Assembly (NCBI GenBank): GCA_937625935.1
Contig: CALMHQ010000001.1
Location: 39,802-103,801 of the forward strand
Direction of reading: 5' to 3'
From: Tetramitus jugosus
Lineage: Eukaryota; Protista; Heterolobosea
Length of the DNA: 64,000 bases
Position numbers and translations under genes: made by a program. This document shows positions 1 through 64,000 of the stretch, in pieces. How positions within the stretch are numbered: the stretch's first letter is position 1; each line of letters opens with the position of its first letter. Under the pieces are notes generated by a model. It was not told the DNA's origin, ran no database searches, and worked only from the letters and a program-made list of their open reading frames with translations.

Positions 1-21
1 TTGCATCGTTCATGGTTGCCA

Positions 22-272
22 CCAGAAATGACTTTAAGTTTTAGGTGAATTTCACATGTCGCACTGCTAACCTTCTTATTTCTTTGATAGTCCTGATACT
101 GTCCAACCAATCAAGTGTGCTGTTGTGCAACAAGAGACATTGTTCTTAACTACCTCCAGAAATGACCTTAGGTTTTAGGTGAATTTCACATGCCGCGCTA
201 CTAACCTTCTCATCTCTGATACTGTCTAACCAATCAAGTGTTCTGTTGTGCAACAAGAGACGTTGGTCTTAA
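22..272 (+). repeat. Diverged ~125-bp tandem duplication (copies at ~32305-32555 - and ~42969-43219 +)
   Basis: CCAGAAATGAC..TTTTAGGTGAATTTCACATG..AACCAATCAAGTGT..TGTTGTGCAACAAGAGAC occurs twice. Confidence 0.85.
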
Positions 273-2055
273 CTTTGCTCCTAGAAAAAACTCAGTCAGT
301 TTATGTCTTATAGATGAATCGCTTGCACTGCTGTTTAATTAACAATGTTGTGTTCCATGCGTCATATTAGATTGGAGCAATCACGCCTCCATCTCACACT
401 TGACCTCGATCTCGACTTTGGCCTAAGAGGAAAAGTGACCCTCCTGTGTTTCATAAAGACGAACCGTGTGAGCTTCTTGTTTATTCAATAGTGTTGTATG
501 TTACTGGTTTAATTGGATTGGCCAAATGACGACCTTCGGGTCACACTCGATCTCGACTTTGGCCACAACTTCGCGTTCGACGTGACCACTTGTGTTTAAT
601 AGAGACTAACCGCTTGTGCTGTTTGTTTATCTGATAGTGTTATATGTTACTCGTTTCTTTGGATTGTATCAGATATGCTCCCCTAACAAAATTTCTAATT
701 TTCCGACACTAAAAAACGGCGCATTATCAAATGATTCTGCTAAAACTGCAACATATCAATATTTAATTTTGATTCTTCTCCACATAAAATTATCCCGCTA
801 TCTTGCTCCCCTGAGAGTTTCTATTTTCCCGACTTTTATCCACGCATAATTTTATTACTCCGCTTGCGTTGAATATATATATATATGTATACAGTAAATA
901 ATATCACAAGATAATTTCTCCGCATGCTCAGGGAAGGAGCTAAATTTTTCGGAGAAATATACGACGGGGTTATTGGGAACCTGACTGATGACATAGAGAG
1001 GAAATATAGATTATATAAAATGGTGCATGACAGAACCGGGCTAACTTGCTTCCTCTCCATTTTAGCTGTCAATAATTTTTTCGTGTTTTTGGGCTCCTGG
1101 AAAACATGAAATTTTGGCTACTTTGCGAGGAAGCATAGAATCGCCAAAGCGAAAAAACTGACGATATATATGTTCATATTCAAGGAAAAAAAAATACCCA
1201 TTTTTTGACGATTTTATTGATTTACGAAAAAATTCGCTACTTTGAGCGTGGTCGACCTTTTTTTGCTAAAAAAACATGTCTCTACTTCATCTGGTGACCA
1301 AATGGCCTTAAGTACGAACAGTAACTATAACATTTTAACATCGTTATATTTTTCGGTTAGGCTTAAATCCCCGCCAGTAAAAAGTTCCTTATGTTTTTTA
1401 AAATCGTAGGGGGGGGTTTACCGAAAATCACTTTTTGGGTGTTTTTGATTTTCTCGCGCTAATGATTTGCTCACTATATTGCATACTACCTCCATGCATA
1501 CTTTTTTTTCATTATGCTTCCTTTAGAAGTGTCGGAGTTCGGAGTATTAATAGGGGCATTATTACTGGTATCCATTGGAAGTACATACATACAATATATA
1601 TATTTGATATCTGTAGTTTTTCAGGGAAACTGTTTTATCATTCTTTCAGAGACTTACTTTTTCTGCCAGCAACAGAGAGAGAGTGATATGAGAAGACACA
1701 GATGACGCAGTGAAGAAATCACGAGCACGAGAGAATCAGCCAAACGAAGCTGTGGGAGACAGGCCACACACCTAGATCTGACTGCAGCTATCTCCCACAG
1801 TTGAATTTGATTACTCCACTATCGAACATGATTTCTTCTCTAGATCTTATACGACTTCCATGTTTACTTTTTCTTCATTATGCTTCCTTTAGAAGTGTCG
1901 GAGTTCGGAGTATTAATAGGGGCATAGTCAAAGTTCTCCATTGAAACTACATACATACAATATACTTATTTGATAGCTGTAGTTTTTCAGGGAAACTGTT
2001 TTATTACTATATTTGTGGCACGTTTCTGTTGCCGACCACATTCCACCCTCCATCC

Positions 2056-2636
2056 AACTTTTGCACTCGAAATATTGAGTTTCAAAGTGTCAATCGGCTC
2101 TCGCTCTACATAACTATCACAGTTGTGAGGTTCGTGCTCAAGTGAATTGAATATATGAAACACTTTATGTCACAATGGCTCTCGACTGGAGTAGGATTGG
2201 GTGAGCCACATTGTGACATAAAGTGTTTCATATATGGCATCTGCTCAAACACGAACCTCACAACAGCAATGGCTATGTAGAGCGAGAGCCGATTGAAACT
2301 ATGAAACTCAATATTTCGAGTGCAAAAGTTGTTAGTCGAGAGGTGGAGAGTGATGTAGTTAAAAGTCGTCTCACTATAATGAGTTTTGAATTATCAATCG
2401 GCTCTCGCTCTACATAGCTATCACAGTTGTGAGGTTCGTGCTCAAGTGAATTGAATATATGAAACACTTTATGTCACAATGGCTCTCGACTGGAGTAGGA
2501 TTGGGTGAGCCACATTGTGACATAAAGTGTTTCATATATGGGATCTGCTCGAGCACAAACATTATAACAGCAATAGATATACAGAGCGAGAGCCGATTGA
2601 AACTTTGAAACTCAATATTTCGCGCACAAAAGTTGC
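2056..2636. repeat. Two tandem fold-back (palindromic) elements, period 304 bp
   Basis: Perfect 27-bp IR ATATATGAAACACTTTATGTCACAATG (2151-2177 / 2209-2235) inside longer imperfect arms containing TCAATCGGCTCTCGCTC / GAGCGAGAGCCGATTGA. Further copies at ~14990-15250, 15455-15715, 29940-30520, 36300-36860, 38970-39230, 45005-45585 and 59810-60540. Confidence 0.93.
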
Positions 2637-3941
2637 GATGGAGGGTTGGGTGGTGATCGGCAACAGAAAAAGTGCCACAAATATAGTAATAAAACAGTTT
2701 CCCTGAAAAACTACAGCTATCAAATAAGTATATTGTATGTATGAAGTTTCAATGGAGACCAGTAACAATACTCCTATAAATACTCCGAACTCCGACACTT
2801 CTAAAGGAAGCATAGTAGAGAGAAAGCGAGTTGGGAGTAGCAAGCAATATAATAGACAAATGATTAGCGTGAGCGGAGTAACCAAATTCAACTGTGATGG
2901 ACAGAGTCGGATGACTTTCTGGGCGTCGGTCGGAGTTAAATATGACCATCATAGTTGAATATTATTAATCCGCTAGTGCTGATGATTTGATCTTAATATC
3001 TTATACAACTTCCATCTTTACTTTTTCTCTAAAATGCTCCGTTTCAATGTCGGAGAAATTAACTCTCTGAAAGAATAATAAAACAGTTTCCCTGAAAAAC
3101 TACAGCTATCAAATATTTATATATTACGCATACAATTTCAATGGAAAACTTCGACTATGCCCCTATTAATACTCCGAACTCCGACAAATGTAAAGGAAGC
3201 ATAATAGAGAAAAAGTAAAGATGGAAGTTGTAAGCAATATAGTGAAGAGAGGAATAGCACAAGCGAATTGACTGTACGAAACTAAAAAATGTGAAATTTA
3301 GAGAGTGAAATTTGGAGTGAGTTGGTCTGTCGACGAACATTCGTGTGATTTGTTTCGAAAACACCTATTTTCTAAACGGTGCATTGCTTTGGTCTAATTC
3401 TCGTGTTGTTTCATAGCTTCATAATATTGTCTCTGTGGCCCAAGAGTCAGTCAAATTAGACTGGCAGATTTCTTGTCGAAAAAAAAAAGTCCATGGAAAA
3501 GCATCGGAGAAATGATATTTATGGTGAATTAGAACAGAAAATTAATATTTTCTAGGTATTATGGACATAGATTATTAATCCGACATGCCGTTTTTGAGAA
3601 AAAAAGGATTGCTCCTCAGGGGAGTTTTTCCGACCCCTAGTGATGATACAAAAACGTAAAATTTTATGTTGAAATATATTTCATCGGTAGACGATTTACA
3701 ATTGGAGATAGTGATTTTTTGATTTTTTCCGAAAAATTCCAAAAAAGTACAGATGAAACTCCGATGCAGCTAAATGTGTGAACATAGAGTGACACAGGAT
3801 TTTTCGATTTTTGATTTTTGGCCAGATTATGTAGGGTGTCATAGCAACCAGTTTCACCCTGGATGTGCACATATATATATATAGCCGTGACTGGGACCGT
3901 CTCCCAGCCCCCCACGCAAAATACGGTTTTTTGGTGGGAGT

Positions 3942-4425
3942 AAGAGAAAAAAGAGAAAAAAAAAGAAGGAGAAGAGAGAAAAGAAGAAGGAGAAGAGAGA
4001 AAGAAGAAGGAGGAGAGGAGAAGAGAGAGAAGGAGGAGAGAAGGAGGAAGGGAAGAAGGAGGAGAGGAAGGGAGATGAAGGTAGGAGGAAGGAGAAGAGA
4101 AGAGGAAGGAGAAGAGAAGAAGAAAAAAGAAGGTAAGAGGGGAGGTAAGGTATCTAGAAAGTAGGTAAGAGGGGAGGTAAGGTATCTAGAAAGTAGGTAG
4201 AAGGAGGAAGGAGGTAGGCTGAAAGGAGGTAGGCTGAAAGGAGGTAGGCTGAAAGGAGGTAGGCTGAAAGGAGGTAGGAAGAAGGTGGGCCGAGAGAAGG
4301 AGGTAAGAAGGTAGGCCGAAAAGAAGGCAGGCTGAAAGGAGGTAGAAGGAGGTAAGGAGATAGGTAGAAAGGAGGTAGGTAGAAGGAGGTAAGAAGGTAG
4401 GCCGAAAGGAGGTAGGTAGAAAGGA
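3942..4425 (+). repeat. Polypurine tract and AGGTAG-based short repeats upstream of the rRNA unit (copies at ~28152-28635 - and ~46890-47373 +)
   Basis: G/A-only sequence from 3942 to ~4075, 31-bp AGGTAAGAGGGGAGGTAAGGTATCTAGAAAG(T)-type repeat x2, 15-bp AGGAGGTAGGCTGAA x4. Confidence 0.92.
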
Positions 4426-4550
4426 GGCGTGTAGTATAGAATCTAGTATTCTTAATATGAAGCTTATTGCGTCCTGGTGACGTAGTAGGAATAGTGCTTA
4501 TGGGGCTCATGCTTCAGTACAAGCGCACCAACAACTCGCGTTCCGAACAG
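4413..4550 (+). promoter_or_regulatory. Putative RNA Pol I promoter/initiation block of the rRNA unit (copies at 28027-28164 - and 47361-47498 +)
   Basis: 138-bp block ending 158 bp before the SSU, preceded by purine-rich repeats and duplicated elsewhere in the spacer. Function is inferred from position only. Confidence 0.55.
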
Positions 4551-4708
4551 TTTTATCAGTCGTAACTTCGGTTTGACTGCTTTTATAGGTGTTTAGAAAA
4601 ATCTAGTGAGTTTTACGACTCACAAGAACCAATAGATTTTTAATCTAGTTACTAGAAAGCTGCAAGCTTAGCACGCAGTCTTAATAGGGCTAGAGAGAAA
4701 ATCATGAT

Positions 4709-6060
4709 TACCTGGTTGATCCTGCCAGTAGTCATATGCTTGTCTCAAAGATTAAGCCATGCATGTGTAAGATCGGCATAGTTTTGGGAAGAGGTTCGCC
4801 TCAACCCTTATTCATTGTTAATCTGTGAAAGGCTCATTAAACAAGTTATGAATTTAGCCACCTGGTACAACCCTTCGGGGATGGGAATAACACTGTCAAC
4901 TGCAGCGATAATGCCTACGATTACTGTTGAATTAAGTAGACAGTAGACACTAGAGTAAGGGTGAGTCCGCTCTATTGTTAGCTGGGAGGATCCAAGATTC
5001 GTCGGAAGATCTGAACAGTTGTCGACCATTAGATTTTCGCTTGCTTGCAAGCGAATGCAGCGTGAATGACTTAGCGTCCTAATAAGACCTACGGCTTTCT
5101 TGTTGACTAGTGGCCAGGAAGATATGTTTCTAATCTATCAGCTCAGTAGTTTCGGTAAAGGCGAAACGAGGCTATAACGGATACGGGGGATTGGTGTCCA
5201 ACTCCGGAGAGAGAGCCTGAGAAACGGCTATCACATCTAAGGACGGCAGCAGGCGCGTAAATTACCCAATTCTAATTCAGAGAGGTAGTGACAAGACATA
5301 GCGACTTTACACCAAATGGTGGAAAGGTACCACTTTGTGGTTTGAAATGGATGGAGATTAAACCTCTCCATGAGTAGCAATTAGAGGACAAGTCTGGTGC
5401 CAGCACCCGCGGTAATTCCAGCTCTAAAAGTGTATATTAATACTGTTGTAGTTAAAACGCCCGTAGTAAACCAAAGGGTTATAGTTATTGATCTGATCAG
5501 TTCTGTTCATCATAGTCGGTCACGTATTGTGGCTGATTGGGTGAATAAGGACAGGTCCTCGGTCTCTAACGGAAGCGAAAGGGTCCGCCCAATTAGCATC
5601 CGCCATGGGATAGGTCAATGATTATGGCTCGTTCCCTATCAGTCCGTAAGGTCTGATAGGGCCAATTGGCACAACCGTAAACAAATCAGAGTGCTCCAAG
5701 CAGGCAATGTACGGGGTAACCCATTTGCTTGAATGATTTAGCATGGAATTGTCACGAAGCCGATCGGAAACTTCAAGGGATTTCCTGAGAAGTGGAAGAT
5801 CCGGCGTTCGCAATGAGACACTGATAGAGGATCCAAGTACTATGGCGCGAGAGGTGAAATTCAGTGACCGCTATATGACTATCTAATGCGAAAGCAGTTG
5901 TGATCCAGAGCGTGTCTGTCAATCAGGGACGAAAGTTAAGGGATCGAAGATGATTAGATACCGTCGTAGTCTTAACCGTAAACGATACCAACACGAGATT
6001 GGTAGTGAGACTTTTAGATCCTATCAGAATCCAAGGGAAACCGTTAAGTTTTTGGGTTCT

Positions 6061-6106
<46 letters not shown>

Positions 6107-6825
6107 AGGCACCACCAGGAGTGGAGTATGCGGCTTAATTCGACTCAACGCGGGGAAACTCACCAAGTTAGGATGTGAATATGATTGACAGATTAAGGTT
6201 CTTTCTTGATTTTACAGAAGGTGGTGCATGGTCGTTCTTAGTTCGTGGAGTGATTCGTCTTGTTAATTCAGTTAACGAGCGAGACCTTAACTTGCTAATT
6301 AAGGTACAGGGACTTCTTCGGTTGTCCATCGTTTCGTTGGGGGAATGTATATTTCCTCAGGAAACCTGTACTGTCACTGTTCGCAGTGATGCTTCTTAGA
6401 GGTACAGCACCCGCTTCAGGGTGAGGAAGTTTAAGGCAATAACAGATCTGTGATGCCCTTAGATATCTTGGGCTGCACGCGTACTACAATATTAATAGCA
6501 ACAAGTAACGTAGAGTCATCTTTCGGGATGCAACCCTGGTCCGAAAGGATTGGGAAATCTTATCAAAGATTAATGTGACAGGGATCGAGGTTTGTAAATC
6601 CTCGTGAACGAGGAATTCCTAGTAAGCATGATTCATCATGTCGTATTGGCTTCGTCCCTGCCTTTTGTACACACCGCCCGTCGCTCGTACCGACTGAATA
6701 GAGGTATGAATTTGATGGACCAGCGTTGCTCTAAGCAATGCGAGAAAATCAACTGAATTTCTCTATTTGTAGGAACGAGAAGTCGTAACAAGGTCTTCGT
6801 AGGTGAACCTGCGGAGGGATCATTT
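4709..6825 (+). rRNA. 18S (SSU) rRNA, copy 1, ~2.12 kb, no group I intron
   Basis: Starts TACCTGGTTGATCCTGCCAGTAGTCATATGCTTGTCTCAAAGATTAAGCCATGC. Internal GTGCCAGCACCCGCGGTAATTCC, AAACTTAAAGGAATTGACGG and TTGTACACACCGCCCGTCGC. Ends AAGTCGTAACAAGGTCTTCGTAGGTGAACCTGCGGAGGGATCATTT. Confidence 0.98.
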
Positions 6826-7067
6826 ATTCGGTTGCATCAACCAGGCAATCTTCGGATTGTCATGCAACCACTGACATTGTCAGAAGGTCAACATTGGAAT
6901 CTCCGTCCAATGTTAAGACTTGACTGGTAGGAGAGTAAAACAAAAGACATTGAAGTCGATCACATTTCGATGTGACGATGTCTTTTCACAACTAGTGTGT
7001 GTTTTGAGGAGTATCAGAAACAATCCGTTCTGATGCGTCACTTTGGTGAAACTCAGCGACTAGGATG
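6826..7067 (+). other. ITS1 (~240 nt, rich in hairpins)
   Basis: Lies between the SSU 3' end and 5.8S. Contains hairpins such as AAAAGACAT..GATCACATTTCGATGTGACGATGTCTTTT at ~6942-6985. Boundaries approximate. Confidence 0.85.
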
Positions 7068-7227
7068 GATGCTTTGCGATGGATGACTAGGGTCTTGTAT
7101 CGATGAAGAACGCGGTTAAACGTGACAGTTAATGTGACTTGCAACTCCCGTGAATCATCAAGATTTTGAACGCATACGGAACTCTTGCTGCTTTCGAGTA
7201 GCAAGGGTACTTGCTTGTGAGTGTCAG
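7068..7227 (+). rRNA. 5.8S rRNA, copy 1
   Basis: Conserved motifs TCGATGAAGAACGC, GTGAATCATCAAGATTTTGAACGCA and terminal TGAGTGTCA. Ends approximate. Confidence 0.93.
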
Positions 7228-7354
7228 TATCTCATTCATATTAGCTTTGGGAGGTCTTTCAACCAATTGATTTGGATTTAAGAACCCTCAGCTATCGTCA
7301 ATCTTAGGATTGGGTACAGAGATATCTTCGGATTTTTCATACATACTGATTTTT
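7228..7354 (+). other. ITS2 (~125 nt)
   Basis: Lies between 5.8S and the LSU start motif TGACCTC...ACCCACTGAATTTAAGCATAT. Boundaries approximate. Confidence 0.8.
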
Positions 7355-9832
7355 CTGACCTCATTTGTGAGTGGTTACCCACTGAATTTAAGCATATTAG
7401 TAAGTGGAGGAAAAGAAATCAAAAGAGATTCTCCTAGTAGCGGCGAGCGAAAAGAGAAAAGCCCATCCCTGAATCCGAACAATTGTTTGGAGTTGTAGGG
7501 TAAGAGTTGATCGCCTGGAGGCAAATAGAAGTAAAGTCTGTGTTTGGAATTACACGTCTCTTCGGAGGGCGAGACAGGGTGATAGCCCCGTCAGCTTCTA
7601 TAAGCTTTCGATCGGTGATCTTCTCATGAGTAGGATTCTTTGAAAGTAGAATCTGAATACGGGAGATGAACTTCTTCCAAGGCTAAATATTAATACAAGA
7701 CACCGATAGCAAACAAGTACCGAGAGGGAAAGTTGAAAAGATTCCTGGTAAGGAGCTGAAAAATGTCTGAAATCGCTGAGCAAAAAGCGGAACCAACAAG
7801 TTCTAGGACTGTAGTCTTGTACAATCTGGATTTATCCTGATGTACTCAAGGATTACTCAACCAACGCCATGTCTTCTGGGCACGGTAAAAAAGCAGGTTC
7901 TTCGGTCTGAAGACTGCTGGAAATCACCTATGAAGCTGAAGTCAGACACCTTATCTAAGATAGGGTAGACGGCTAAGGCCAGTGGGTGCTTCTCAGTAGT
8001 TCGAAAGCAATGGCCCCTGCAATCGTTGGTAAAGGACATTGGATCCGGCCCGTCTTGAAACACGGACCAAGGAGTTTGACATAATAGCGAGCAGTGGTGA
8101 TTTGAAATCATGTATGCGTAATGAATGTGAAATGTATTAGCTTCGGCGACGTACAGGCCAATCCAGTAGACTTCGGTCGTGGAATTGCGTTCTAGTTATT
8201 ATGTTAAGACCCGAAAGATGGTGATCTATACTTGAACAGATTGAAGCCAGGGTAACCTCTGGTGGAGGATCTTGTAACGATGTTGACGTGCAAATCGCTC
8301 GTCGCACTTGAGTATTGGAGCGAAAGACTCATCGAACCATCAGGTAGCTGGTTCCTTCCGAAATTTCCCTCAGGATAGCTAGAATCGGAATAACTTTGTG
8401 AGGTAAAGCTAATGATTAGAGGCCTTGGGGTTGGAAAGCCTTAACCTATTCTCAAACTTTAAATATGCAAAAAGTATTGGTTACTTAATCGAACCATGTC
8501 AATAGTATTGATTCTTAGTGGGCCGTGTTATGGTAAGCAGAACAGGCAATGTGGGTTAAACCGTGAGCAAGTGAGAAATGTGTCTAAATCTAAGCTTAGT
8601 CGAAACCATAAAAGGCGTTGGTTCATTTTGACAGCAGGACGGTGGCCATGGAAGCTGGAATCCGCTAAGGAGTGCGTAACAGCTCACCTGCCGAATGGAG
8701 CAGCCCTGAAAATGGATGACGCCAAAGCGTTGATACTTCTCTCATGCAGTTATCACTATTTTGTATGTGATGACTTGTAGGAAGGCGTGACGGTTGCGTA
8801 GAAGCTTATTTAGTGATAATGAGTGGAGCGGCCGTTAGTGCAGATCTTGGTAGTAGTAGCAACTATTCTGGAGAGACTCTGTGTCTTTATCTAGCAGGTG
8901 GTCCAACGTCAATGTTGGATAAAGAGCTTAAATCTTGAAGGTCGTAGTGGAGAAGGTTTCCTTGTCAATGGAAATCAGACAAGGGTTAGTCGGTCCTAAC
9001 TGTCTGGGTAACTCCTATTAGTAGCTTTCGAGCGGCTATGATGGGCAGGAAAGGGAATCAGGCTAAAATTCCTGAACTGTGGTTAGAAGAGTGCTGGTGT
9101 TCGCATCAGCATGAAGCTGCAAAGCCTCGTTCAGTTGGCGTAGCGTCTCGGTGGCTGTGGAAGAGTCCGCTTTTCTCCCTAACAGCGATTGGCCTCACGG
9201 CACTAACCTTGGTTGGTGTTGGAGGTTTATTATCTCCCATGAATTGTGTAGAACAGAGATTGGGAAATATTAGAGCTGAAAAGGCAGGCACTATTATTGT
9301 GGCTGTACAGTTCTCCGAAGCGTAAATAGAATGCCAATTGAATGTTATCATCTGACTCTTCTAACTGTAACCGTACCAGAATCCGCAACAGGTCTCCAAG
9401 GTTAAAAGCCTCTGACCAATTAGAACAATGTAAGTAAGGGAAGTCGGCAAAATGGATTTGTACTTTTGAAATAAAGGTTGGCTCTTGTGATAGGGTGCTT
9501 CGGGTGGCGCAAGAAGGGTATCACGCACGGTTAACCCCGTGTGAGTGGTGTGCAGAAATTGCGGATTGATGAGTAGGTTCGCCGAAAGTTAAGAAGCTTT
9601 ACACTGTGCATCCGGTACTTGGGCGGCGTCAAGCAGTGTGTTACGGGAGAACCTGTGACACACCGGCGGAGTACAATAAACTATTGTTCGAGAACTGACA
9701 GATCCCAGGAGAATTCGACTGTTTAATTAAAACAAAGCAAACAGATAACAGTTCAAAACGGATTGTGGCTGTTTGTGACTTCTGCCCAGTGCTCTGGATG
9801 TCAAAGTGAAGAGATTCGATCAAGCACGGGTT

Positions 9833-9882
<50 letters not shown>

Positions 9883-10495
9883 TTAATTTGTGACGTGCAT
9901 GAATGGAACAACGAAATTCTTACTGTCCCTATTTACGGTCTAGCGAACCTACAGCCAAGGGAACGGGCTTGGGTTAGTCAGCGGGGAAAGAAGACCCTGT
10001 TGAGTTTGACTCTAGTTTGGTTTTGTGGAATACCGAAAGAGATGTAGTATAGGTGGGAGAGCTTGCTCAACAATGAAATACCACTGCTTTTTACTGGTAT
10101 CTCACTCACTATATTAAAGAGCGAAGTATTCTATGGGTTTACCCATGGAAGACTCTTCTAGTATAGAAGCGCGTGGCTTCGGTCATGCGTAAGCTTATGA
10201 TTGATATGGGACATAACCAAGTGGGGAGTTTGGCTGGGGCGGCACATCTGTTAAAAGCTAACGCAGGTGTACAAAGGTTGGCACAGATAGGTCAGAAACC
10301 TATCGTAGCGAACAAGGTCAATAGCCAGCTTGACAAATACTTTCAGTACAAGTATTAGCCGTGAAAGCGTGTCCTAGCGATCCTTTAGCGAACATCACGT
10401 TTACGTGTAGTGCTTCAAAGTTCGAAGCTAGAGGTGTCAGAAAAATTACCATAGGGATAACTGGCTTGTGGCAGCCAAGCGTTCATAGCGACGTT

Positions 10496-10540
<45 letters not shown>

Positions 10541-10575
10541 GAATTCTCAAAGTGTTGGATTGTTCACCCACTAAC

Positions 10576-10630
<55 letters not shown>

Positions 10631-11095
10631 ACTTATTTTTGACGCGAAAGCGTCTGGTCCAGCGTGGCGGTAATAGGTTTTAGTACGAGAGGAACCACCT
10701 TATGATGCCTCTGGCTCACCTTTTATCGGCAACGATCGTGAAGAGTGTCTACGCATCTTGACCAACGCCTGAACGCCTCTAAGGCGGAAGTCATTCCGGA
10801 TCGCTGGATTATTGGTGTTGGACTTTATTTATACAAGTCAAAGCCTAGCTTAATCACTGTGGCCAATTTTAACCACTTCCTAACCGGGTGGGGTACGTGC
10901 ATTCCTATGAGTGTGCTTACTTCGTTCGAGGGTTGTGGTCAGAAGCCAGTTCGAATGCAAACAAGTGGTAGCAGTTACTCTTCTGGAAGACCACCAGGGA
11001 AGAAGATCGCAATCTTGCGGTATTTGGGCAAAGTGCAGGTGTACGATCATAAGGTGATTCAATCGCCGAATGACTGAGCCGAGCACGACTTGCCA
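7355..11095 (+). rRNA. 28S (LSU) rRNA, copy 1, no group I intron; 3' end approximate
   Basis: ACCCACTGAATTTAAGCATAT, CCGTCTTGAAACACGGACCAAGGAG, GACTCTCTTAAGGTAGCCAAATGCCTCGTC, the peptidyl-transferase region (GATGTCGGCTCTTCC, GAGCTGGGTTTAGACCGTCGTGAGACAGG) and the sarcin-ricin loop AGTACGAGAGGAACC at ~10682. Confidence 0.96.
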
Positions 11096-11317
11096 AGGAG
11101 GATAAGGTGATCCTTTGATCACGTTTTCGTGAAACAGAGGAAGGCCCGTAAAGGGAGAGAGGGGGATCCCAAGACCCGAAGAGGGAGAGGGAGGCCCAAG
11201 CCCAGAATGGATGGGGCAATCTAACTCTGACATGAGGCCCAAGGCCTTTCTGGCTCATCTTCTGCTTTCCTTGTCGCCTTGTTGGTTTGGATAGAAAGTG
11301 TTCCACTTGGTTGGGCC

Positions 11318-11366
11318 ATTATTTTTAAAAGTTTATATAAATTTTTCTTATTATTATTTTTTTTCA
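11318..11366 (+). terminator. T-rich tract after the 3' ETS, candidate Pol I transcript release site
   Basis: ATTATTTTTAAAAGTTTATATAAATTTTTCTTATTATTATTTTTTTTC immediately precedes the 625-bp array. Function inferred from position. Confidence 0.35.
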
Positions 11367-11370
11367 AATT

Positions 11371-13827: not shown

Positions 13828-13904
13828 CTCTCTTGTCATCGCCCCAAGAGTTTCGACGACAAATGTTCGGTTGTTGGGTGGGAAATCTCATGCCCTAGCT
13901 GTCT

Positions 13905-14372
13905 AAACAGTTTCCCTGTAAAACTAAGGTTATTAACTACCTATATTGTATGTATATACTTTCAATAGAATTCGGTATCAATGCCTCTAATAAAACTCCG
14001 AACTCCGACACTTCTAAAGGAAGCATAACGGAGAAAAAGTGAGAGAATACATAACAATTAATATACAGATAAAATCATGAGCGCGAGCAGAATGATCAAT
14101 CAACACTATGAGGGACAGGGTCGCCCATGTTTAAAGCAGTCTGCCGGGTTCAATCCTGTTCCTCATAGTTGTGTATCATCAATCTGCTCATGCTCGTGAT
14201 TTGTCTATTATGTTACTTGTAATTTCTATTCTCACTTTTTCTTTATTGTGCTTTATCTTTGTTTGTCGGAGTTCGGAGTATTAATAGGGGCATGGTACAA
14301 ACTTTTCATTGGAAATACATACATACAATATACATATTTGATAGCTGTAATTTTTCAGGGAAACTGTTTTGT
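13905..14372. repeat. Imperfect ~470-bp inverted repeat built from two copies of the dispersed 130-bp module (mirrors at ~16330-16797, 58729-59196, 61156-61623)
   Basis: AAACAGTTTCCCTG..CTCCGAACTCCGACA..ACTATGAGGGACAGG / CCTGTTCCTCATAGT..TGTCGGAGTTCGGAG..CAGGGAAACTGTTT. Confidence 0.85.
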
Positions 14373-21946: not shown

Positions 21947-22001
<55 letters not shown>

Positions 22002-22036
22002 GTTAGTGGGTGAACAATCCAACACTTTGAGAATTC

Positions 22037-22081
<45 letters not shown>

Positions 22082-22694: not shown

Positions 22695-22744
<50 letters not shown>

Positions 22745-49008: not shown

Positions 49009-49054
<46 letters not shown>

Positions 49055-50015: not shown

Positions 50016-50175
50016 GATGCTTTGCGATGGATGACTAGGGTCTTGTATCGATGAAGAACGCGGTTAAACGTGACAGTTAATGTGACTTGCAACTCCCGTG
50101 AATCATCAAGATTTTGAACGCATACGGAACTCTTGCTGCTTTCGAGTAGCAAGGGTACTTGCTTGTGAGTGTCAG
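50016..50175 (+). rRNA. 5.8S rRNA, copy 3
   Basis: Direct copy of copy 1 at offset 42948. Confidence 0.93.
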
Positions 50176-50302
50176 TATCTCATTCATATTAGCTTTGGGA
50201 GGTCTTTCAACCAATTGATTTGGATTTAAGAACCCTCAGCTATCGTCAATCTTAGGATTGGGTACAGAGATATCTTCGGATTTTTCATACATACTGATTT
50301 TT

Positions 50303-52780: not shown

Positions 52781-52830
<50 letters not shown>

Positions 52831-53443
52831 TTAATTTGTGACGTGCATGAATGGAACAACGAAATTCTTACTGTCCCTATTTACGGTCTAGCGAACCTAC
52901 AGCCAAGGGAACGGGCTTGGGTTAGTCAGCGGGGAAAGAAGACCCTGTTGAGTTTGACTCTAGTTTGGTTTTGTGGAATACCGAAAGAGATGTAGTATAG
53001 GTGGGAGAGCTTGCTCAACAATGAAATACCACTGCTTTTTACTGGTATCTCACTCACTATATTAAAGAGCGAAGTATTCTATGGGTTTACCCATGGAAGA
53101 CTCTTCTAGTATAGAAGCGCGTGGCTTCGGTCATGCGTAAGCTTATGATTGATATGGGACATAACCAAGTGGGGAGTTTGGCTGGGGCGGCACATCTGTT
53201 AAAAGCTAACGCAGGTGTACAAAGGTTGGCACAGATAGGTCAGAAACCTATCGTAGCGAACAAGGTCAATAGCCAGCTTGACAAATACTTTCAGTACAAG
53301 TATTAGCCGTGAAAGCGTGTCCTAGCGATCCTTTAGCGAACATCACGTTTACGTGTAGTGCTTCAAAGTTCGAAGCTAGAGGTGTCAGAAAAATTACCAT
53401 AGGGATAACTGGCTTGTGGCAGCCAAGCGTTCATAGCGACGTT

Positions 53444-53488
<45 letters not shown>

Positions 53489-53523
53489 GAATTCTCAAAG
53501 TGTTGGATTGTTCACCCACTAAC

Positions 53524-53578
<55 letters not shown>

Positions 53579-54043
53579 ACTTATTTTTGACGCGAAAGCG
53601 TCTGGTCCAGCGTGGCGGTAATAGGTTTTAGTACGAGAGGAACCACCTTATGATGCCTCTGGCTCACCTTTTATCGGCAACGATCGTGAAGAGTGTCTAC
53701 GCATCTTGACCAACGCCTGAACGCCTCTAAGGCGGAAGTCATTCCGGATCGCTGGATTATTGGTGTTGGACTTTATTTATACAAGTCAAAGCCTAGCTTA
53801 ATCACTGTGGCCAATTTTAACCACTTCCTAACCGGGTGGGGTACGTGCATTCCTATGAGTGTGCTTACTTCGTTCGAGGGTTGTGGTCAGAAGCCAGTTC
53901 GAATGCAAACAAGTGGTAGCAGTTACTCTTCTGGAAGACCACCAGGGAAGAAGATCGCAATCTTGCGGTATTTGGGCAAAGTGCAGGTGTACGATCATAA
54001 GGTGATTCAATCGCCGAATGACTGAGCCGAGCACGACTTGCCA
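50303..54043 (+). rRNA. 28S (LSU) rRNA, copy 3
   Basis: Direct copy of copy 1 at offset 42948. Confidence 0.96.
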
Positions 54044-54318
54044 AGGAGGATAAGGTGATCCTTTGATCACGTTTTCGTGAAACAGAGGAAGGCCCGTAAA
54101 GGGAGAGAGGGGGATCCCAAGACCCGAAGAGGGAGAGGGAGGCCCAAGCCCAGAATGGATGGGGCAATCTAACTCTGACATGAGGCCCAAGGCCTTTCTG
54201 GCTCATCTTCTGCTTTCCTTGTCGCCTTGTTGGTTTGGATAGAAAGTGTTCCACTTGGTTGGGCCATTATTTTTAAAAGTTTATATAAATTTTTCTTATT
54301 ATTATTTTTTTTCAAATT

Positions 54319-57300
54319 GTGTCTTTTATCTTTTCTGCTTGCGCTGCTTGTTTATCTAATAGAGTTGTATGTTGTGCGTTTCATTTAGTTGGCCTGTGTA
54401 TGCTTCCTCTTGCCCTTGTTCTTAGACAAGCCATTAAGTAAGCCTCAGTCGAAGTCAGATGGACAATGCTTCATCACCTTGGTACACTTATCGCTAGTGA
54501 TCAGAGCAATTTCTGAGCAAGTGTCATAGAGCTGTCCTGCTTGCGCTGCTTGTTTATTCAATAGTGTTGTATGTTGTGCGTTTGATTAGATTGGTTCAGG
54601 CATGGCTTTTGTGCCACAAGTCATGTTGCTTTTAGGCAGACCTACAAAGGCGCGAGACTAGAGTAGGAGTGCCGTAGCGCCAAGCTGCTTGTGTTGTGTC
54701 TTTATTCAATAGTGTTGATATTATGCATTGGATCAGATTGGCGCAGGTATGACTTTTGTGCCACAATTGATGTTGGTCTTGGGCACACCTCCAAGGCAGA
54801 CAGTGTACCATTTTGTGTCGTAGAGCCGAACTGCTTGCGATGCTTGTTTATTTAATAATGTTGTATGTTGTTAGTTTGATTAGATTGGCGCACATATGCT
54901 CCAGTGGTCTGACTTTGCGCCAGTCGCGGCCCTAAAGTTACCAGTGTCTTTTATCTTTTCTGCTTGCGCTGCTTGTTTATCTAATAGAGTTGTATGTTGT
55001 GCGTTTCATTTAGTTGGCCTGTGTATGCTTCCTCTTGCCCTTGTTCTTAGACAAGCCATTAAGTAAGCCTCAGTCGAAGTCAGATGGACAATGCTTCATC
55101 ACCTTGGTACACTTATCGCTAGTGATCAGAGCAATTTCTGAGCAAGTGTCATAGAGCTGTCCTGCTTGCGCTGCTTGTTTATTCAATAGTGTTGTATGTT
55201 GTGCGTTTGATTAGATTGGTTCAGGCATGGCTTTTGTGCCACAAGTCATGTTGCTTTTAGGCAGACCTACAAAGGCGCGAGACTAGAGTAGGAGTGCCGT
55301 AGCGCCAAGCTGCTTGTGTTGTGTCTTTATTCAATAGTGTTGATATTATGCATTGGATCAGATTGGCGCAGGTATGACTTTTGTGCCACAATTGATGTTG
55401 GTCTTGGGCACACCTCCAAGGCAGACAGTGTACCATTTTGTGTCGTAGAGCCGAACTGCTTGCGATGCTTGTTTATTTAATAATGTTGTATGTTGTTAGT
55501 TTGATTAGATTGGCGCACATATGCTCCAGTGGTCTGACTTTGCGCCAGTCGCGGCCCTAAAGTTACCAGTGTCTTTTATCTTTTCTGCTTGCGCTGCTTG
55601 TTTATCTAATAGAGTTGTATGTTGTGCGTTTCATTTAGTTGGCCTGTGTATGCTTCCTCTTGCCCTTGTTCTTAGACAAGCCATTAAGTAAGCCTCAGTC
55701 GAAGTCAGATGGACAATGCTTCATCACCTTGGTACACTTATCGCTAGTGATCAGAGCAATTTCTGAGCAAGTGTCATAGAGCTGTCCTGCTTGCGCTGCT
55801 TGTTTATTCAATAGTGTTGTATGTTGTGCGTTTGATTAGATTGGTTCAGGCATGGCTTTTGTGCCACAAGTCATGTTGCTTTTAGGCAGACCTACAAAGG
55901 CGCGAGACTAGAGTAGGAGTGCCGTAGCGCCAAGCTGCTTGTGTTGTGTCTTTATTCAATAGTGTTGATATTATGCATTGGATCAGATTGGCGCAGGTAT
56001 GACTTTTGTGCCACAATTGATGTTGGTCTTGGGCACACCTCCAAGGCAGACAGTGTACCATTTTGTGTCGTAGAGCCGAACTGCTTGCGATGCTTGTTTA
56101 TTTAATAATGTTGTATGTTGTTAGTTTGATTAGATTGGCGCACATATGCTCCAGTGGTCTGACTTTGCGCCAGTCGCGGCCCTAAAGTTACCAGTGTCTT
56201 TTATCTTTTCTGCTTGCGCTGCTTGTTTATCTAATAGAGTTGTATGTTGTGCGTTTCATTTAGTTGGCCTGTGTATGCTTCCTCTTGCCCTTGTTCTTAG
56301 ACAAGCCATTAAGTAAGCCTCAGTCGAAGTCAGATGGACAATGCTTCATCACCTTGGTACACTTATCGCTAGTGATCAGAGCAATTTCTGAGCAAGTGTC
56401 ATAGAGCTGTCCTGCTTGCGCTGCTTGTTTATTCAATAGTGTTGTATGTTGTGCGTTTGATTAGATTGGTTCAGGCATGGCTTTTGTGCCACAAGTCATG
56501 TTGCTTTTAGGCAGACCTACAAAGGCGCGAGACTAGAGTAGGAGTGCCGTAGCGCCAAGCTGCTTGTGTTGTGTCTTTATTCAATAGTGTTGATATTATG
56601 CATTGGATCAGATTGGCGCAGGTATGACTTTTGTGCCACAATTGATGTTGGTCTTGGGCACACCTCCAAGGCAGACAGTGTACCATTTTGTGTCGTAGAG
56701 CCGAACTGCTTGCGATGCTTGTTTATTTAATAATGTTGTATGTTGTTAGTTTGATTAGATTGGCGCACATATGCTCCAGTGGTCTGACTTTGCGCCAGTC
56801 GCGGCCCTAAATGTTACCAGTGTCTTTTATCTTTTCTGCTTGCGCTGCTTGTTTATCTAATAGAGTTGTATGTTGTGCGTTTCATTTAGTTGGCCTGTGT
56901 ATGCTTCCTCTTGCCCTTGTTCTTAGACAAGCCATTAAGTAAGCCTCAGTCGAAGTCAGATGGACAATGCTTCATCACCTTGGTACACTTATCGCTAGTG
57001 ATCAGAGCAATTTCTGAGCAAGTGTCATAGAGCTGTCCTGCTTGCGCTGCTTGTTTATTCAATAGTGTTGTATGTTGTGCGTTTGATTAGATTGGTTCAG
57101 GCATGGCTTTTGTGCCACAAGTCATGTTGCTTTTAGGCAGACCTACAAAGGCGCGAGACTAGAGTAGGAGTGCCGTAGCGCCAAGCTGCTTGTGTTGTGT
57201 CTTTATTCAATAGTGTTGATATTATGCATTGGATCAGATTGGCGCAGGTATGACTTTTGTGCCACAATTGATGTTGGTCTTGGGCACACCTCCAAGGCAG

Positions 57301-58651
57301 ACAGTGTACCATTTTGTGTCGTAGAGCCGAACTGCTTGCGATGCTTGTTTATTTAATAATGTTGTATGTTGTTAGTTTGATTAGATTGGCGCACATATGC
57401 TCCAGTGGTCTGACTTTGCGCCAGTCGCGGCCCTAAAGTTACCAGTGTCTTTTATCTTTTCTGCTTGCGCTGCTTGTTTATCTAATAGAGTTGTATGTTG
57501 TGCGTTTCATTTAGTTGGCCTGTGTATGCTTCCTCTTGCCCTTGTTCTTAGACAAGCCATTAAGTAAGCCTCAGTCGAAGTCAGATGGACAATGCTTCAT
57601 CACCTTGGTACACTTATCGCTAGTGATCAGAGCAATTTCTGAGCAAGTGTCATAGAGCTGTCCTGCTTGCGCTGCTTGTTTATTCAATAGTGTTGTATGT
57701 TGTGCGTTTGATTAGATTGGTTCAGGCATGGCTTTTGTGCCACAAGTCATGTTGCTTTTAGGCAGACCTACAAAGGCGCGAGACTAGAGTAGGAGTGCCG
57801 TAGCGCCAAGCTGCTTGTGTTGTGTCTTTATTCAATAGTGTTGATATTATGCATTGGATCAGATTGGCGCAGGTATGACTTTTGTGCCACAATTGATGTT
57901 GGTCTTGGGCACACCTCCAAGGCAGACAGTGTACCATTTTGTGTCGTAGAGCCGAACTGCTTGCGATGCTTGTTTATTTAATAATGTTGTATGTTGTTAG
58001 TTTGATTAGATTGGCGCACATATGCTCCAGTGGTCTGACTTTGCGCCAGTCGCGGCCCTAAAGTTACCAGTGTCTTTTATCTTTTCTGCTTGCGCTGCTT
58101 GTTTATCTAATAGAGTTGTATGTTGTGCGTTTCATTTAGTTGGCCTGTGTATGCTTCCTCTTGCCCTTGTTCTTAGACAAGCCATTAAGTAAGCCTCAGT
58201 CGAAGTCAGATGGACAATGCTTCATCACCTTGGTACACTTATCGCTAGTGATCAGAGCAATTTCTGAGCAAGTGTCATAGAGCTGTCCTGCTTGCGCTGC
58301 TTGTTTATTCAATAGTGTTGTATGTTGTGCGTTTGATTAGATTGGTTCAGGCATGGCTTTTGTGCCACAAGTCATGTTGCTTTTAGGCAGACCTACAAAG
58401 GCGCGAGACTAGAGTAGGAGTGCCGTAGCGCCAAGCTGCTTGTGTTGTGTCTTTATTCAATAGTGTTGATATTATGCATTGGATCAGATTGGCGCAGGTA
58501 TGACTTTTGTGCCACAATTGATGTTGGTCTTGGGCACACCTCCAAGGCAGACAGTGTACCATTTTGTGTCGTAGAGCCGAACTGCTTGCGATGCTTGTTT
58601 ATTTAATAATGTTGTATGTTGTTAGTTTGATTAGATTGGCGCACATATGCT
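54319..58651 (+). repeat. 625-bp tandem array, ~6.9 copies
   Basis: Same unit; one copy has a single-base insertion near 56812. Confidence 0.97.
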
Positions 58652-60067
58652 CTCTCTTGTCATCGCCCCAAGAGTTTCGACGACAAATGTTCGGTTGTTG
58701 GGTGGGAAATCTCATGCCCTAGCTGTCTAAACAGTTTCCCTGTAAAACTAAGGTTATTAACTACCTATATTGTATGTATATACTTTCAATAGAATTCGGT
58801 ATCAATGCCTCTAATAAAACTCCGAACTCCGACACTTCTAAAGGAAGCATAACGGAGAAAAAGTGAGAGAATACATAACAATTAATATACAGATAAAATC
58901 ATGAGCGCGAGCAGAATGATCAATCAACACTATGAGGGACAGGGTCGCCCATGTTTAAAGCAGTCTGCCGGGTTCAATCCTGTTCCTCATAGTTGTGTAT
59001 CATCAATCTGCTCATGCTCGTGATTTGTCTATTATGTTACTTGTAATTTCTATTCTCACTTTTTCTTTATTGTGCTTTATCTTTGTTTGTCGGAGTTCGG
59101 AGTATTAATAGGGGCATGGTACAAACTTTTCATTGGAAATACATACATACAATATACATATTTGATAGCTGTAATTTTTCAGGGAAACTGTTTTGTCACT
59201 ATATTTATAGCGCGCCCTCTGTCATCGCCACCCCCGACCGACAACCATCGCACTCAAAATACTGGGCTTTGAATCTTTCATCGGCTCTCGCTCTGGATAG
59301 CTATCACAGTTGTGATGTTTGTGCTCAAGTGAATTGGTCGTACGAAACACTTTGTGCCACAATGGCTCTCAATTGGGTTGGGATTGGTTGGGTCACACTT
59401 TGGCTCTTATTGTTTCACATGAGCAATCTGCTCGAACACAAATGTCACAACTAAAATATATGCATGGAGCGAGAGCGAATTAATAATATACAACTATGAG
59501 GGCCATCGTTGAATTCATCAGAGCACGCTGGACACAACAATCCTGTCCCTCACAGTTGAATTTGATTACTCCACTATCGAACATGATTTCTTCTCTAGAT
59601 CTTATACGACTTCCATGTTTACTTTTTCTTCATTATGCTTCCTTTAGAAGTGTCGGAGTTCGGAGTATTAATAGGGGCATAGTCAAAGTTCTCCATTGAA
59701 ACTACATACATACAATATACATATTTGATAGCTTTAGTTTTTCAGGGAAACTGTTTTATTACTATATTTGTGGCACGTTTCTGTTGCCGACCACCACCCA
59801 ACCCTCCATCGCAACTTTTGTGCGCGAAATATTGAGTTTCAAAGTTTCAATCGGCTCTCGCTCTGTATATCTATTGCTGTTATAATGTTTGTGCTCGAGC
59901 AGATCCCATATATGAAACACTTTATGTCACAATGTGGCTCACCCAATCCTACTCCAGTCGAGAGCCATTGTGACATAAAGTGTTTCATATATTCAATTCA
60001 CTTGAGCACGAACCTCACAACTGTGATAGCTATGTAGAGCGAGAGCCGATTGATAATTCAAAACTCA

Positions 60068-60283
60068 ATATATTGGATGCAAAAGTTGTTGGTTGGGGGG
60101 GAGAGACACAACCATCTCGAAATGTTGCAAAATACGTTTTCAATTGGCTCGTGCTTACACATGATAATCACTATAGCTATGCAGAGCGCAAGTCAATTGA
60201 AACTATGAAACTCAATATTTCGAGTGCAAAAGTTGTTAGTCGAGAGGTGGAGAGTGATGTAGTTAAAAGTCGTCTCACTATAA
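60068..60283 (-). other. Tail-to-tail junction spacer, orientation B (reverse complement of 15244-15458)
   Basis: Reads ATATATTGGATGCAAAAGTTG...CGTCTCACTATAA on the + strand, i.e. inverted relative to the first junction. Confidence 0.93.
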
Positions 60284-61700
60284 TGAGTTTTGAATTATCA
60301 ATCGGCTCTCGCTCTACATAGCTATCACAGTTGTGAGGTTCGTGCTCAAGTGAATTGAATATATGAAACACTTTATGTCACAATGGCTCTCGACTGGAGT
60401 AGGATTGGGTGAGCCACATTGTGACATAAAGTGTTTCATATATGGGATCTGCTCGAGCACAAACATTATAACAGCAATAGATATACAGAGCGAGAGCCGA
60501 TTGAAACTTTGAAAACTCAATATTTCGCGCACAAAAGTTGCGATGGAGGGTTGGGTGGTGGTCGGCAACAGAAACGTGCCACAAATATAGTAATAAAACA
60601 GTTTCCCTGAAAAACTAAAGCTATCAAATATGTATATTGTATGTATGTAGTTTCAATGGAGAACTTTGACTATGCCCCTATTAATACTCCGAACTCCGAC
60701 ACTTCTAAAGGAAGCATAATGAAGAAAAAGTAAACATGGAAGTCGTATAAGATCTAGAGAAGAAATCATGTTCGATAGTGGAGTAATCAAATTCAACTGT
60801 GAGGGACAGGATTGTTGTGTCCAGCGTGCTCTGATGAATTCAACGATGGCCCTCATAGTTGTATATTATTAATTCGCTCTCGCTCCATGCATATATTTTA
60901 GTTGTGACATTTGTGTTCGAGCAGATTGCTCATGTGAAACAATAAGAGCCAAAGTGTGACCCAACCAATCCCAACCCAATTGAGAGCCATTGTGGCACAA
61001 AGTGTTTCGTACGACCAATTCACTTGAGCACAAACATCACAACTGTGATAGCTATCCAGAGCGAGAGCCGATGAAAGATTCAAAGCCCAGTATTTTGAGT
61101 GCGATGGTTGTCGGTCGGGGGTGGCGATGACAGAGGGCGCGCTATAAATATAGTGACAAAACAGTTTCCCTGAAAAATTACAGCTATCAAATATGTATAT
61201 TGTATGTATGTATTTCCAATGAAAAGTTTGTACCATGCCCCTATTAATACTCCGAACTCCGACAAACAAAGATAAAGCACAATAAAGAAAAAGTGAGAAT
61301 AGAAATTACAAGTAACATAATAGACAAATCACGAGCATGAGCAGATTGATGATACACAACTATGAGGAACAGGATTGAACCCGGCAGACTGCTTTAAACA
61401 TGGGCGACCCTGTCCCTCATAGTGTTGATTGATCATTCTGCTCGCGCTCATGATTTTATCTGTATATTAATTGTTATGTATTCTCTCACTTTTTCTCCGT
61501 TATGCTTCCTTTAGAAGTGTCGGAGTTCGGAGTTTTATTAGAGGCATTGATACCGAATTCTATTGAAAGTATATACATACAATATAGGTAGTTAATAACC
61601 TTAGTTTTACAGGGAAACTGTTTAGACAGCTAGGGCATGAGATTTCCCACCCAACAACCGAACATTTGTCGTCGAAACTCTTGGGGCGATGACAAGAGAG

Positions 61701-64000
61701 AGCATATGTGCGCCAATCTAATCAAACTAACAACATACAACATTATTAAATAAACAAGCATCGCAAGCAGTTCGGCTCTACGACACAAAATGGTACACTG
61801 TCTGCCTTGGAGGTGTGCCCAAGACCAACATCAATTGTGGCACAAAAGTCATACCTGCGCCAATCTGATCCAATGCATAATATCAACACTATTGAATAAA
61901 GACACAACACAAGCAGCTTGGCGCTACGGCACTCCTACTCTAGTCTCGCGCCTTTGTAGGTCTGCCTAAAAGCAACATGACTTGTGGCACAAAAGCCATG
62001 CCTGAACCAATCTAATCAAACGCACAACATACAACACTATTGAATAAACAAGCAGCGCAAGCAGGACAGCTCTATGACACTTGCTCAGAAATTGCTCTGA
62101 TCACTAGCGATAAGTGTACCAAGGTGATGAAGCATTGTCCATCTGACTTCGACTGAGGCTTACTTAATGGCTTGTCTAAGAACAAGGGCAAGAGGAAGCA
62201 TACACAGGCCAACTAAATGAAACGCACAACATACAACTCTATTAGATAAACAAGCAGCGCAAGCAGAAAAGATAAAAGACACTGGTAACTTTAGGGCCGC
62301 GACTGGCGCAAAGTCAGACCACTGGAGCATATGTGCGCCAATCTAATCAAACTAACAACATACAACATTATTAAATAAACAAGCATCGCAAGCAGTTCGG
62401 CTCTACGACACAAAATGGTACACTGTCTGCCTTGGAGGTGTGCCCAAGACCAACATCAATTGTGGCACAAAAGTCATACCTGCGCCAATCTGATCCAATG
62501 CATAATATCAACACTATTGAATAAAGACACAACACAAGCAGCTTGGCGCTACGGCACTCCTACTCTAGTCTCGCGCCTTTGTAGGTCTGCCTAAAAGCAA
62601 CATGACTTGTGGCACAAAAGCCATGCCTGAACCAATCTAATCAAACGCACAACATACAACACTATTGAATAAACAAGCAGCGCAAGCAGGACAGCTCTAT
62701 GACACTTGCTCAGAAATTGCTCTGATCACTAGCGATAAGTGTACCAAGGTGATGAAGCATTGTCCATCTGACTTCGACTGAGGCTTACTTAATGGCTTGT
62801 CTAAGAACAAGGGCAAGAGGAAGCATACACAGGCCAACTAAATGAAACGCACAACATACAACTCTATTAGATAAACAAGCAGCGCAAGCAGAAAAGATAA
62901 AAGACACTGGTAACTTTAGGGCCGCGACTGGCGCAAAGTCAGACCACTGGAGCATATGTGCGCCAATCTAATCAAACTAACAACATACAACATTATTAAA
63001 TAAACAAGCATCGCAAGCAGTTCGGCTCTACGACACAAAATGGTACACTGTCTGCCTTGGAGGTGTGCCCAAGACCAACATCAATTGTGGCACAAAAGTC
63101 ATACCTGCGCCAATCTGATCCAATGCATAATATCAACACTATTGAATAAAGACACAACACAAGCAGCTTGGCGCTACGGCACTCCTACTCTAGTCTCGCG
63201 CCTTTGTAGGTCTGCCTAAAAGCAACATGACTTGTGGCACAAAAGCCATGCCTGAACCAATCTAATCAAACGCACAACATACAACACTATTGAATAAACA
63301 AGCAGCGCAAGCAGGACAGCTCTATGACACTTGCTCAGAAATTGCTCTGATCACTAGCGATAAGTGTACCAAGGTGATGAAGCATTGTCCATCTGACTTC
63401 GACTGAGGCTTACTTAATGGCTTGTCTAAGAACAAGGGCAAGAGGAAGCATACACAGGCCAACTAAATGAAACGCACAACATACAACTCTATTAGATAAA
63501 CAAGCAGCGCAAGCAGAAAAGATAAAAGACACTGGTAACTTTAGGGCCGCGACTGGCGCAAAGTCAGACCACTGGAGCATATGTGCGCCAATCTAATCAA
63601 ACTAACAACATACAACATTATTAAATAAACAAGCATCGCAAGCAGTTCGGCTCTACGACACAAAATGGTACACTGTCTGCCTTGGAGGTGTGCCCAAGAC
63701 CAACATCAATTGTGGCACAAAAGTCATACCTGCGCCAATCTGATCCAATGCATAATATCAACACTATTGAATAAAGACACAACACAAGCAGCTTGGCGCT
63801 ACGGCACTCCTACTCTAGTCTCGCGCCTTTGTAGGTCTGCCTAAAAGCAACATGACTTGTGGCACAAAAGCCATGCCTGAACCAATCTAATCAAACGCAC
63901 AACATACAACACTATTGAATAAACAAGCAGCGCAAGCAGGACAGCTCTATGACACTTGCTCAGAAATTGCTCTGATCACTAGCGATAAGTGTACCAAGGT
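61701..64000 (-). repeat. 625-bp tandem array, >=3.7 copies (truncated by the window)
   Basis: Reverse complement of the same unit. Confidence 0.96.

Follow-up and report, generated by a model that had tools for sequence, protein, structure and literature searches.

How the ribosomal RNA genes (rDNA) of a heterolobosean amoeba can come to lie in alternating orientation is the question raised by a 64,000-nucleotide stretch of Tetramitus jugosus DNA (positions 39,802 to 103,801 of contig CALMHQ010000001.1), which was analysed as a whole and is referred to below as the window. Heteroloboseans are the textbook case of rDNA carried solely on single-unit circles, such as the closed circular extrachromosomal rDNA element (CERE) of Naegleria. 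A preliminary description of the window read it as a concatemer in which monomers of about 22.4 kb are joined head to head and tail to tail, arising either from an inverted-dimer circle or from a linear replicon with hairpin ends. The computational analysis points, with about even confidence, to a high-copy, extrachromosomal inverted-dimer rDNA replicon, probably a circle of about 43-45 kb, present as a population mixed in repeat number and hinge orientation. Both kinds of junction between the units are versions of one fold-back module, composed of an element E(+), a 38-bp link, 146-bp units and an inverted element E(-).

Rfam cmscan identifies three complete units in the window, each composed of small-subunit (SSU), 5.8S and large-subunit (LSU) rRNA genes. 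Unit 1 lies on the plus strand at 4709-11104 (SSU 4709-6825, 5.8S 7068-7226, LSU 7356-11104), unit 2 on the minus strand at 21473-27868 (LSU 21473-25221, 5.8S 25351-25509, SSU 25752-27868), and unit 3 again on the plus strand at 47657-54052 (SSU 47657-49773, 5.8S 50016-50174, LSU 50304-54052). The tail of a fourth unit, on the minus strand, occupies 60276-64000, where its 3' spacer alone falls inside the window. The alternating +,-,+ order given in the preliminary description is borne out both by Rfam and by comparison of the sequence with itself (self-BLAST). The self-comparison also allows every base of the window to be assigned to one repeated monomer, in agreement with the earlier statement that unique chromosomal DNA is absent from it. 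Two complete units are inverted on one molecule, as units 1(+)/2(-) and as units 2(-)/3(+), and they are separated by two distinct spacers, a downstream one forming the tail hinge (15252-15450) and an upstream one forming the head hinge (36560-38963). Tail-to-tail and head-to-head junctions are the only kinds detected by self-BLAST; no head-to-tail junction, and hence no CERE-type closure around a single cistron, was met with within the 64 kb.

At the tail-to-tail hinge, the 199-bp spacer is flanked by E(+) at 14801-15251 on the left and by E(-), on the minus strand, at 15451-15901 on the right, each being the reverse complement of the other. The spacer contains the link (15253-15290), a 146-bp unit designated U-star (15290-15435) and the first ~15 nucleotides of the next unit. 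The head-to-head hinge is built from the same parts around a spacer of 2.4 kb, in which TRF (Tandem Repeats Finder) and nhmmer place links at 36564 and 36868, U-star at 36905-37050 and 13 further units at 37051-38948; its flanks are E(+) at 36109-36559 and E(-), on the minus strand, at 38964-39417. A second tail-to-tail spacer is located at 60073-60275 on the minus strand, with U-star at 60237-60094, and it appears flipped because it is the mirror image of 15252-15450.

The E element is approximately 450 bp long. At each centre, the two flanks belong to a single type and agree as far as the edge of the spacer, with a single mismatch at the tail hinge (15244 against 15458, 7-8 bases from the spacer edge), and the copies at the tail and head centres are 95-96% identical to each other. 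The E(+) of the tail hinge is 96% identical to 29752-30305 and to 36109-36662. Identical copies of the 38-bp link occur at 15253, 30207, 36564 and 36868, and the U-star copies at 15290-15435 and 36905-37050 obtain the same score, 122.7 bits, against a model of the 146-bp unit. The hinges differ in the number of these units, with one in the tail hinge versus 14 (U-star and 13 others) in the head hinge. The 13 tandem units all run in the same direction and are all identical, and their length equals that of nucleosome-core DNA; their identity suggests that they expanded very recently or are strongly homogenised.

At both junctions, E(+) and E(-) form inverted repeats around an asymmetric, non-palindromic core. 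Neither core is self-complementary: the 199-bp tail core gives a DNA fold z score of -1.86, and the 2.4-kb head core consists of direct repeats. The near-perfect palindrome expected of an unfolded hairpin is found at neither junction. The upstream spacer also holds the relic of a third hinge (29752-30781), with E(+), the 38-bp link, a U-like unit and a degenerate E(-) at 82-87% identity. The sharing of these position-specific structures between hinges, together with the decayed relic, argues against random fold-back chimeras produced in library preparation or assembly.

The preliminary description placed three symmetry centres about 22.4 kb apart. Self-BLAST recovers all three as inverted matches: 11371-15251 against 19331-15451 (centre 15351), 11528-36562 against 64000-38964 (99.97% identity over 25 kb, centre ~37764), and 56351-60075 against 64000-60276 (centre 60176). 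Neighbouring centres are 22.41 kb apart in both intervals, an agreement far beyond chance. However, the centre at 60176 simply mirrors that at 15351, so the window offers two independent observations of a junction and not three. The centres themselves are not palindromic and are occupied by the asymmetric spacers. For the rRNA genes of units 1 and 2, the axis of symmetry lies at 16288 and not at 15351, because the two units differ in the copy number of a 625-bp repeat.

This repeat forms an array 3' of the LSU gene in every unit. In unit 1 the array occupies 11371-13828 on the plus strand and holds 3.9 copies, as determined from the ladder of self-BLAST matches; in unit 2 it occupies 16874-21206 on the minus strand with 6.9 copies, three more than in unit 1; in unit 3 it occupies 54319-58652 on the plus strand, also with 6.9 copies; and in unit 4 it occupies 61700-64000 on the minus strand, with at least 3.7 copies up to the window edge. 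The arms at the tail junction are consequently unequal (3.9 versus 6.9 copies, 1,875 bp apart in length), and those across the head junction are equal in copy number (6.9 versus 6.9). An arm measures 20.5 kb with four repeats and 22.4 kb with seven, and the fixed monomer of about 22.4 kb assumed earlier was not upheld. Each 625-bp repeat holds about 2.5 copies of a 147-bp sub-repeat (TRF). The position of the array downstream of the LSU gene suggests a terminator or a replication fork-barrier array.

Over longer distances, the window is an exact mirror, in which a segment X (11528-36559) is followed by the head spacer and by the reverse complement of X. Only six single-base indels, most of them in homopolymer runs, separate the two halves. 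In addition, 1-13828 is the exact reverse complement of 32576-18749 and, apart from one 1-bp indel, is the same as 42948-56776 at an offset of 42,947 bp (self-BLAST). Past this match, unit 3 carries seven repeats instead of four and the tail spacer is flipped, so that the sequence is a mirror and not a plain second lap. By 625-bp copy number, the arms follow one another in the order 4, 7 / 7 and then at least 3.7. Since the window is mirrored in this way, the long-range order could reflect an assembler walking through the identical arms of ~21-22 kb. The local structure is real, but the concatemer and the higher multimers of the preliminary description are not demonstrated by a window composed of X, a spacer and the reverse complement of X.

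The published assembly of T. jugosus CCAP 1588/3C comprises 26.3 Mb in 52 pseudomolecules and was produced from 37x PacBio HiFi reads with hifiasm and Arima2 Hi-C data, with the rDNA left undescribed (PMC11106597). If HiFi reads of typical length underlie the contig, single reads can span each hinge. The tail junction together with both of its 625-bp arrays, about 10 kb in all, would then also be spannable, and the 4/7 asymmetry is probably real. Such reads, by contrast, would not tie the head hinge to the 625-bp arrays, which lie at a distance of 15 kb on either side. In that case, the arm order could result from an assembler going out along a unitig and returning along its reverse complement.

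The gene content of the window agrees with an element reduced to rRNA genes and spacers. The earlier claim that telomeric repeats are absent is confirmed, as tandem telomere-like repeats of 5-8 nucleotides are lacking throughout the window. Instead of a single centre with distal telomere repeats, as in a linear palindrome, the tail ends are joined to the next unit via a hinge. The claim that no protein-coding sequence is present also holds: the open reading frames (ORFs) in the spacers reach at most 130 amino acids, and the eight largest have no Pfam match. No homologues were found for a 123-amino-acid ORF in the tail arm, and three spacer ORFs correspond to no database record. No tRNA genes were found in the window, and cmscan detected no Rfam family in it beyond rRNA and no 5S gene.

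Public sequencing data, compared with sequence outside the rRNA genes, provide a view beyond the contig. The tail-arm/hinge stretch recurs in 20 public runs drawn from 15 studies and is thus not confined to this assembly. Of the 31-mers sampled from the non-coding tail spacer at 13829-16873, 60-80% are found in metagenomes of these 15 studies, which cover soil, rhizosphere, bioreactors, rock, insects and fresh water; the organism has a cosmopolitan distribution, and the spacer varies remarkably little. Exact matches were absent for a tail-arm 36-mer in metagenome contigs and for a hinge 30-mer in metagenome, prokaryote-genome and viral contigs. When the Logan contigs of four public runs were compared with 13829-15800, contigs from three independent studies crossed the arm/spacer boundary at 15251/15252 without a mismatch. 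A stretch of 156 bp (15176-15331) is, however, identical at all four hinge copies, and contigs crossing the boundary are therefore not diagnostic of tail-to-tail linkage. In the run labelled X15, the summed word depth over the tail-arm/hinge stretch is about 1e6, a depth that does not equal a copy number. Most of the many low-level joints seen in this run across 13829-15800 lie at or beside GATC, GANTC or TTAA sites, and for this reason they are taken as Hi-C ligation products and not as rearrangements. Run X15 is probably a Hi-C library of the source sample prepared with four enzymes.

The best explanation of these observations, held with a confidence close to even, is the inverted-dimer circle of ~45 kb, which is consistent with both kinds of junction and with the lack of telomere repeats. 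In such a molecule, two rDNA units would form one giant inverted repeat, with arms of ~20.5-22.4 kb split by two short asymmetric hinges, and the form present in the cell would be circular (~43-45 kb), like the rDNA of Entamoeba histolytica. Flip and flop isomers would arise when homologous recombination across the long arms inverts one hinge relative to the other, and the copy number of the 625-bp repeat would change through unequal exchange; together, these two processes would lead to a mixed population. The alternating contig of more than 100 kb would be an assembler walk through identical arms, or else a sample of multimers. The circularity of the molecule is deduced from the absence of telomere repeats and from published accounts of heterolobosean rDNA as a circular plasmid (PMC4167309; PMC5805870; PMC7714845). 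Because the arms of the tail junction are unequal (four versus seven repeats), a duplex junction is favoured over a hairpin. Two observations weigh against the inverted-dimer circle. The arm order and the flipped tail spacer are not what an exact unrolling of one circle would give, namely 4, 7, 4, 7, and would have to come from a mixed population or from an assembler artefact. Moreover, among the contigs of the four runs, none spans the hinge with arm-specific sequence on both sides, and none covers the whole spacer.

The same observations can be explained in other ways. Alternating multimers or giant palindromes may exist as real molecules, formed when a break at a hinge allows the E repeats to fold back and copying produces a mirror duplicate, or generated by double rolling-circle replication. 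Fold-back mirror duplication is the mode of palindrome formation of the Tetrahymena type, and double rolling-circle replication is known from the yeast 2-micron plasmid. The exact mirror at the head hinge, whose arms of at least 26 kb include the asymmetric tail junction and 7/7 repeats, would follow directly from such processes. In both hinges, short inverted repeats surround a non-palindromic core, much as the head-to-head centre of Tetrahymena rDNA has a short non-palindromic core between inverted repeats. However, an assembler passing out and back along a unitig yields the same mirror, the six single-base indels between the halves are also expected when the same reads are reused, and typical HiFi reads would be too short to link the head hinge with the distant arrays. 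The existence of real multimers is regarded as possible but doubtful. An extension of this reading, equally tentative, is that the shared hinge serves as a cis-acting amplification device, at which breaks or stalled forks would initiate fold-back copying or a double rolling circle, and that +,-,+,- multimers interconvert with dimer and perhaps monomer circles. If true, this would mean the upkeep of thousands of rDNA copies with neither genes nor a recombinase, which is undescribed for heteroloboseans in the searched literature. It is distinctly unlikely that a single-unit circle of ~22 kb dominates, closed by a head-to-tail hinge (tail-type E(+), units, head-type E(-)), with the inverted junctions being minority products of recombination or template switching that are over-represented in the contig. 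Every Naegleria CERE sequenced has a single unit (PMC5805870, PMC7714845, PMC10112140), and the monomer ends here are inverted E copies 96% identical, so a head-to-tail hinge would look alike locally. Nevertheless, the window contains only inverted junctions, and the pairing of E flanks of one type at each hinge, matching to the spacer edge, is what stable inverted dimers would show.

A linear replicon of ~22 kb with hairpin ends, the other proposal of the preliminary description, is disfavoured and highly improbable. It would explain the junctions as hairpin read-through or as concatemer junctions of the poxvirus or telomere-resolvase type, and it agrees with the alternation of head-to-head and tail-to-tail junctions, with the occurrence of the tail spacer in both orientations, and with the expectation that a natural hairpin would be sequenced as arm, loop, arm. 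The cores are nevertheless not self-complementary, and two strands of a hairpin cannot differ by the 1,875 bp, or three 625-bp repeats, that separate the tail-junction arms. Poxvirus-like flip and flop was considered as a sign of hairpins and rejected: given inverted arms, flip and flop are one sequence read on opposite strands. A chromosomal array of alternately inverted rDNA units, with which the length of the contig and its lack of closure would agree, is very improbable in view of the absence of unique flanking DNA from the window, the very high summed depth in run X15 and the statement that heterolobosean rDNA is plasmid-borne (PMC4167309). A very low probability is likewise assigned to the inverted junctions being library-preparation or assembly chimeras absent from the cell. 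The public-run contigs gave no read-level confirmation of either junction with arm-specific flanks, which would suit chimeras; against them, both junctions fall within the same specialised module instead of at random positions, their cores are structured and non-palindromic, and a spacer contains a diverged relic of the module (29752-30781).

Further repeats accompany the hinges in the upstream spacer. A direct duplication of 1.87 kb is present as a promoter-proximal copy at 28640-30505 and a distal copy at 34996-36862, both on the plus strand, 99.6% identical and offset by 6,356 bp. Each copy ends in a hinge-like structure: the proximal one in the relic hinge, and the distal one in the region containing E(+) at 36109-36559. 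Recombination between the two copies would excise a circle of ~6.4 kb. The unique part of this spacer holds about seven copies of a 43-bp repeat with an 86-bp higher order (33951-34280, mirrored at 41244-41561), which appear iteron-like and could represent an origin or a protein-binding array. Strongly purine/pyrimidine-skewed repeats of 101-124 bp are found at 4199-4386, 28191-28378, 34551-34911 and 40613-40973, that is, directly upstream of each SSU gene and again ~6.4 kb further upstream.

The significance of the locus depends on whether the inverted-dimer replicon is the form present in the cell. Chances are about even that T. jugosus, which is unrelated to Entamoeba, has an inverted rDNA replicon of the Entamoeba kind whose two junctions share a single hinge module. 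If so, the architecture of the rDNA replicon changes within Heterolobosea, and the Entamoeba-type layout arose independently. The common hinge module and its relic offer a concrete candidate element for inversion, dimer formation and copy-number control. The preliminary description was aware of no account of such a layout in a heterolobosean; the searched literature, which did not include Clark and Cross 1987 and 1988, reports single-unit circles only and no such layout. The Clark and Cross 1988 survey of 'schizopyrenid' rDNA plasmids may already record, for one vahlkampfiid, a plasmid with two inverted units. A practical consequence is that identical inverted arms of ~21-22 kb lead assemblers to emit long mirror contigs, which should not be taken for molecules unless single-molecule support is available.

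Comparison with known systems helps to place the T. jugosus element. The concatemer junctions of poxviruses and hairpin telomeres share with it the alternation of head-to-head and tail-to-tail joints and the presence of flip and flop, but they are near-perfect palindromes with identical arms, whereas the cores here are asymmetric and the arms unequal. In the yeast 2-micron plasmid and in chloroplast genomes, two inverted repeats part two unique regions, and recombination between the repeats generates orientation isomers. Inversion during replication can, in circles with inverted repeats, drive double rolling-circle amplification. The T. jugosus element has the same arrangement of two inverted repeats around two unique regions; it differs in that no FLP-like recombinase or other gene is present and in that the repeats make up ~95% of the molecule. 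The linear rDNA of Tetrahymena, Physarum and Dictyostelium likewise has its units arranged as giant inverted repeats and is an extrachromosomal, highly amplified molecule (PMC2111919, PMC6759168). Those molecules, however, have one centre and telomere caps, in place of which a tail-to-tail junction is found here.

The Naegleria CERE is a closed circular extrachromosomal element of 14-16 kb with one unit (PMC5805870, PMC7714845). It belongs to the same amoeba group and resembles the T. jugosus element in having one SSU-5.8S-LSU cistron per unit, a repeat-rich spacer and no 5S gene (PMC5805870, PMC7714845), as well as a very high copy number, for which the counterpart here is a summed depth and not a copy number. 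It differs from the element described here, whose units are joined head to head and tail to tail, are ~50% longer and contain no credible ORFs. In layout, the nearest counterpart is EhR1 of Entamoeba histolytica, a 24.5-kb circle with two inverted rRNA units, although some circles carry one unit (PMC10285105). EhR1 belongs to Amoebozoa and not to the heteroloboseans, and its circular form is known, whereas that of the T. jugosus element is deduced. In the latter, the arms of ~21-22 kb turn nearly the whole replicon into an inverted repeat, and the unique regions, both built from one module, measure a mere 199 bp and 2.4 kb. Both elements nevertheless have two inverted rRNA units with upstream and downstream spacers, and the multicopy extrachromosomal state of EhR1 is the state proposed here. 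Inverted repeats in Entamoeba are furthermore known to recombine and flip the intervening DNA, both on a transfected plasmid and between chromosomal pairs of short interspersed elements (SINEs) (PMC10285105).

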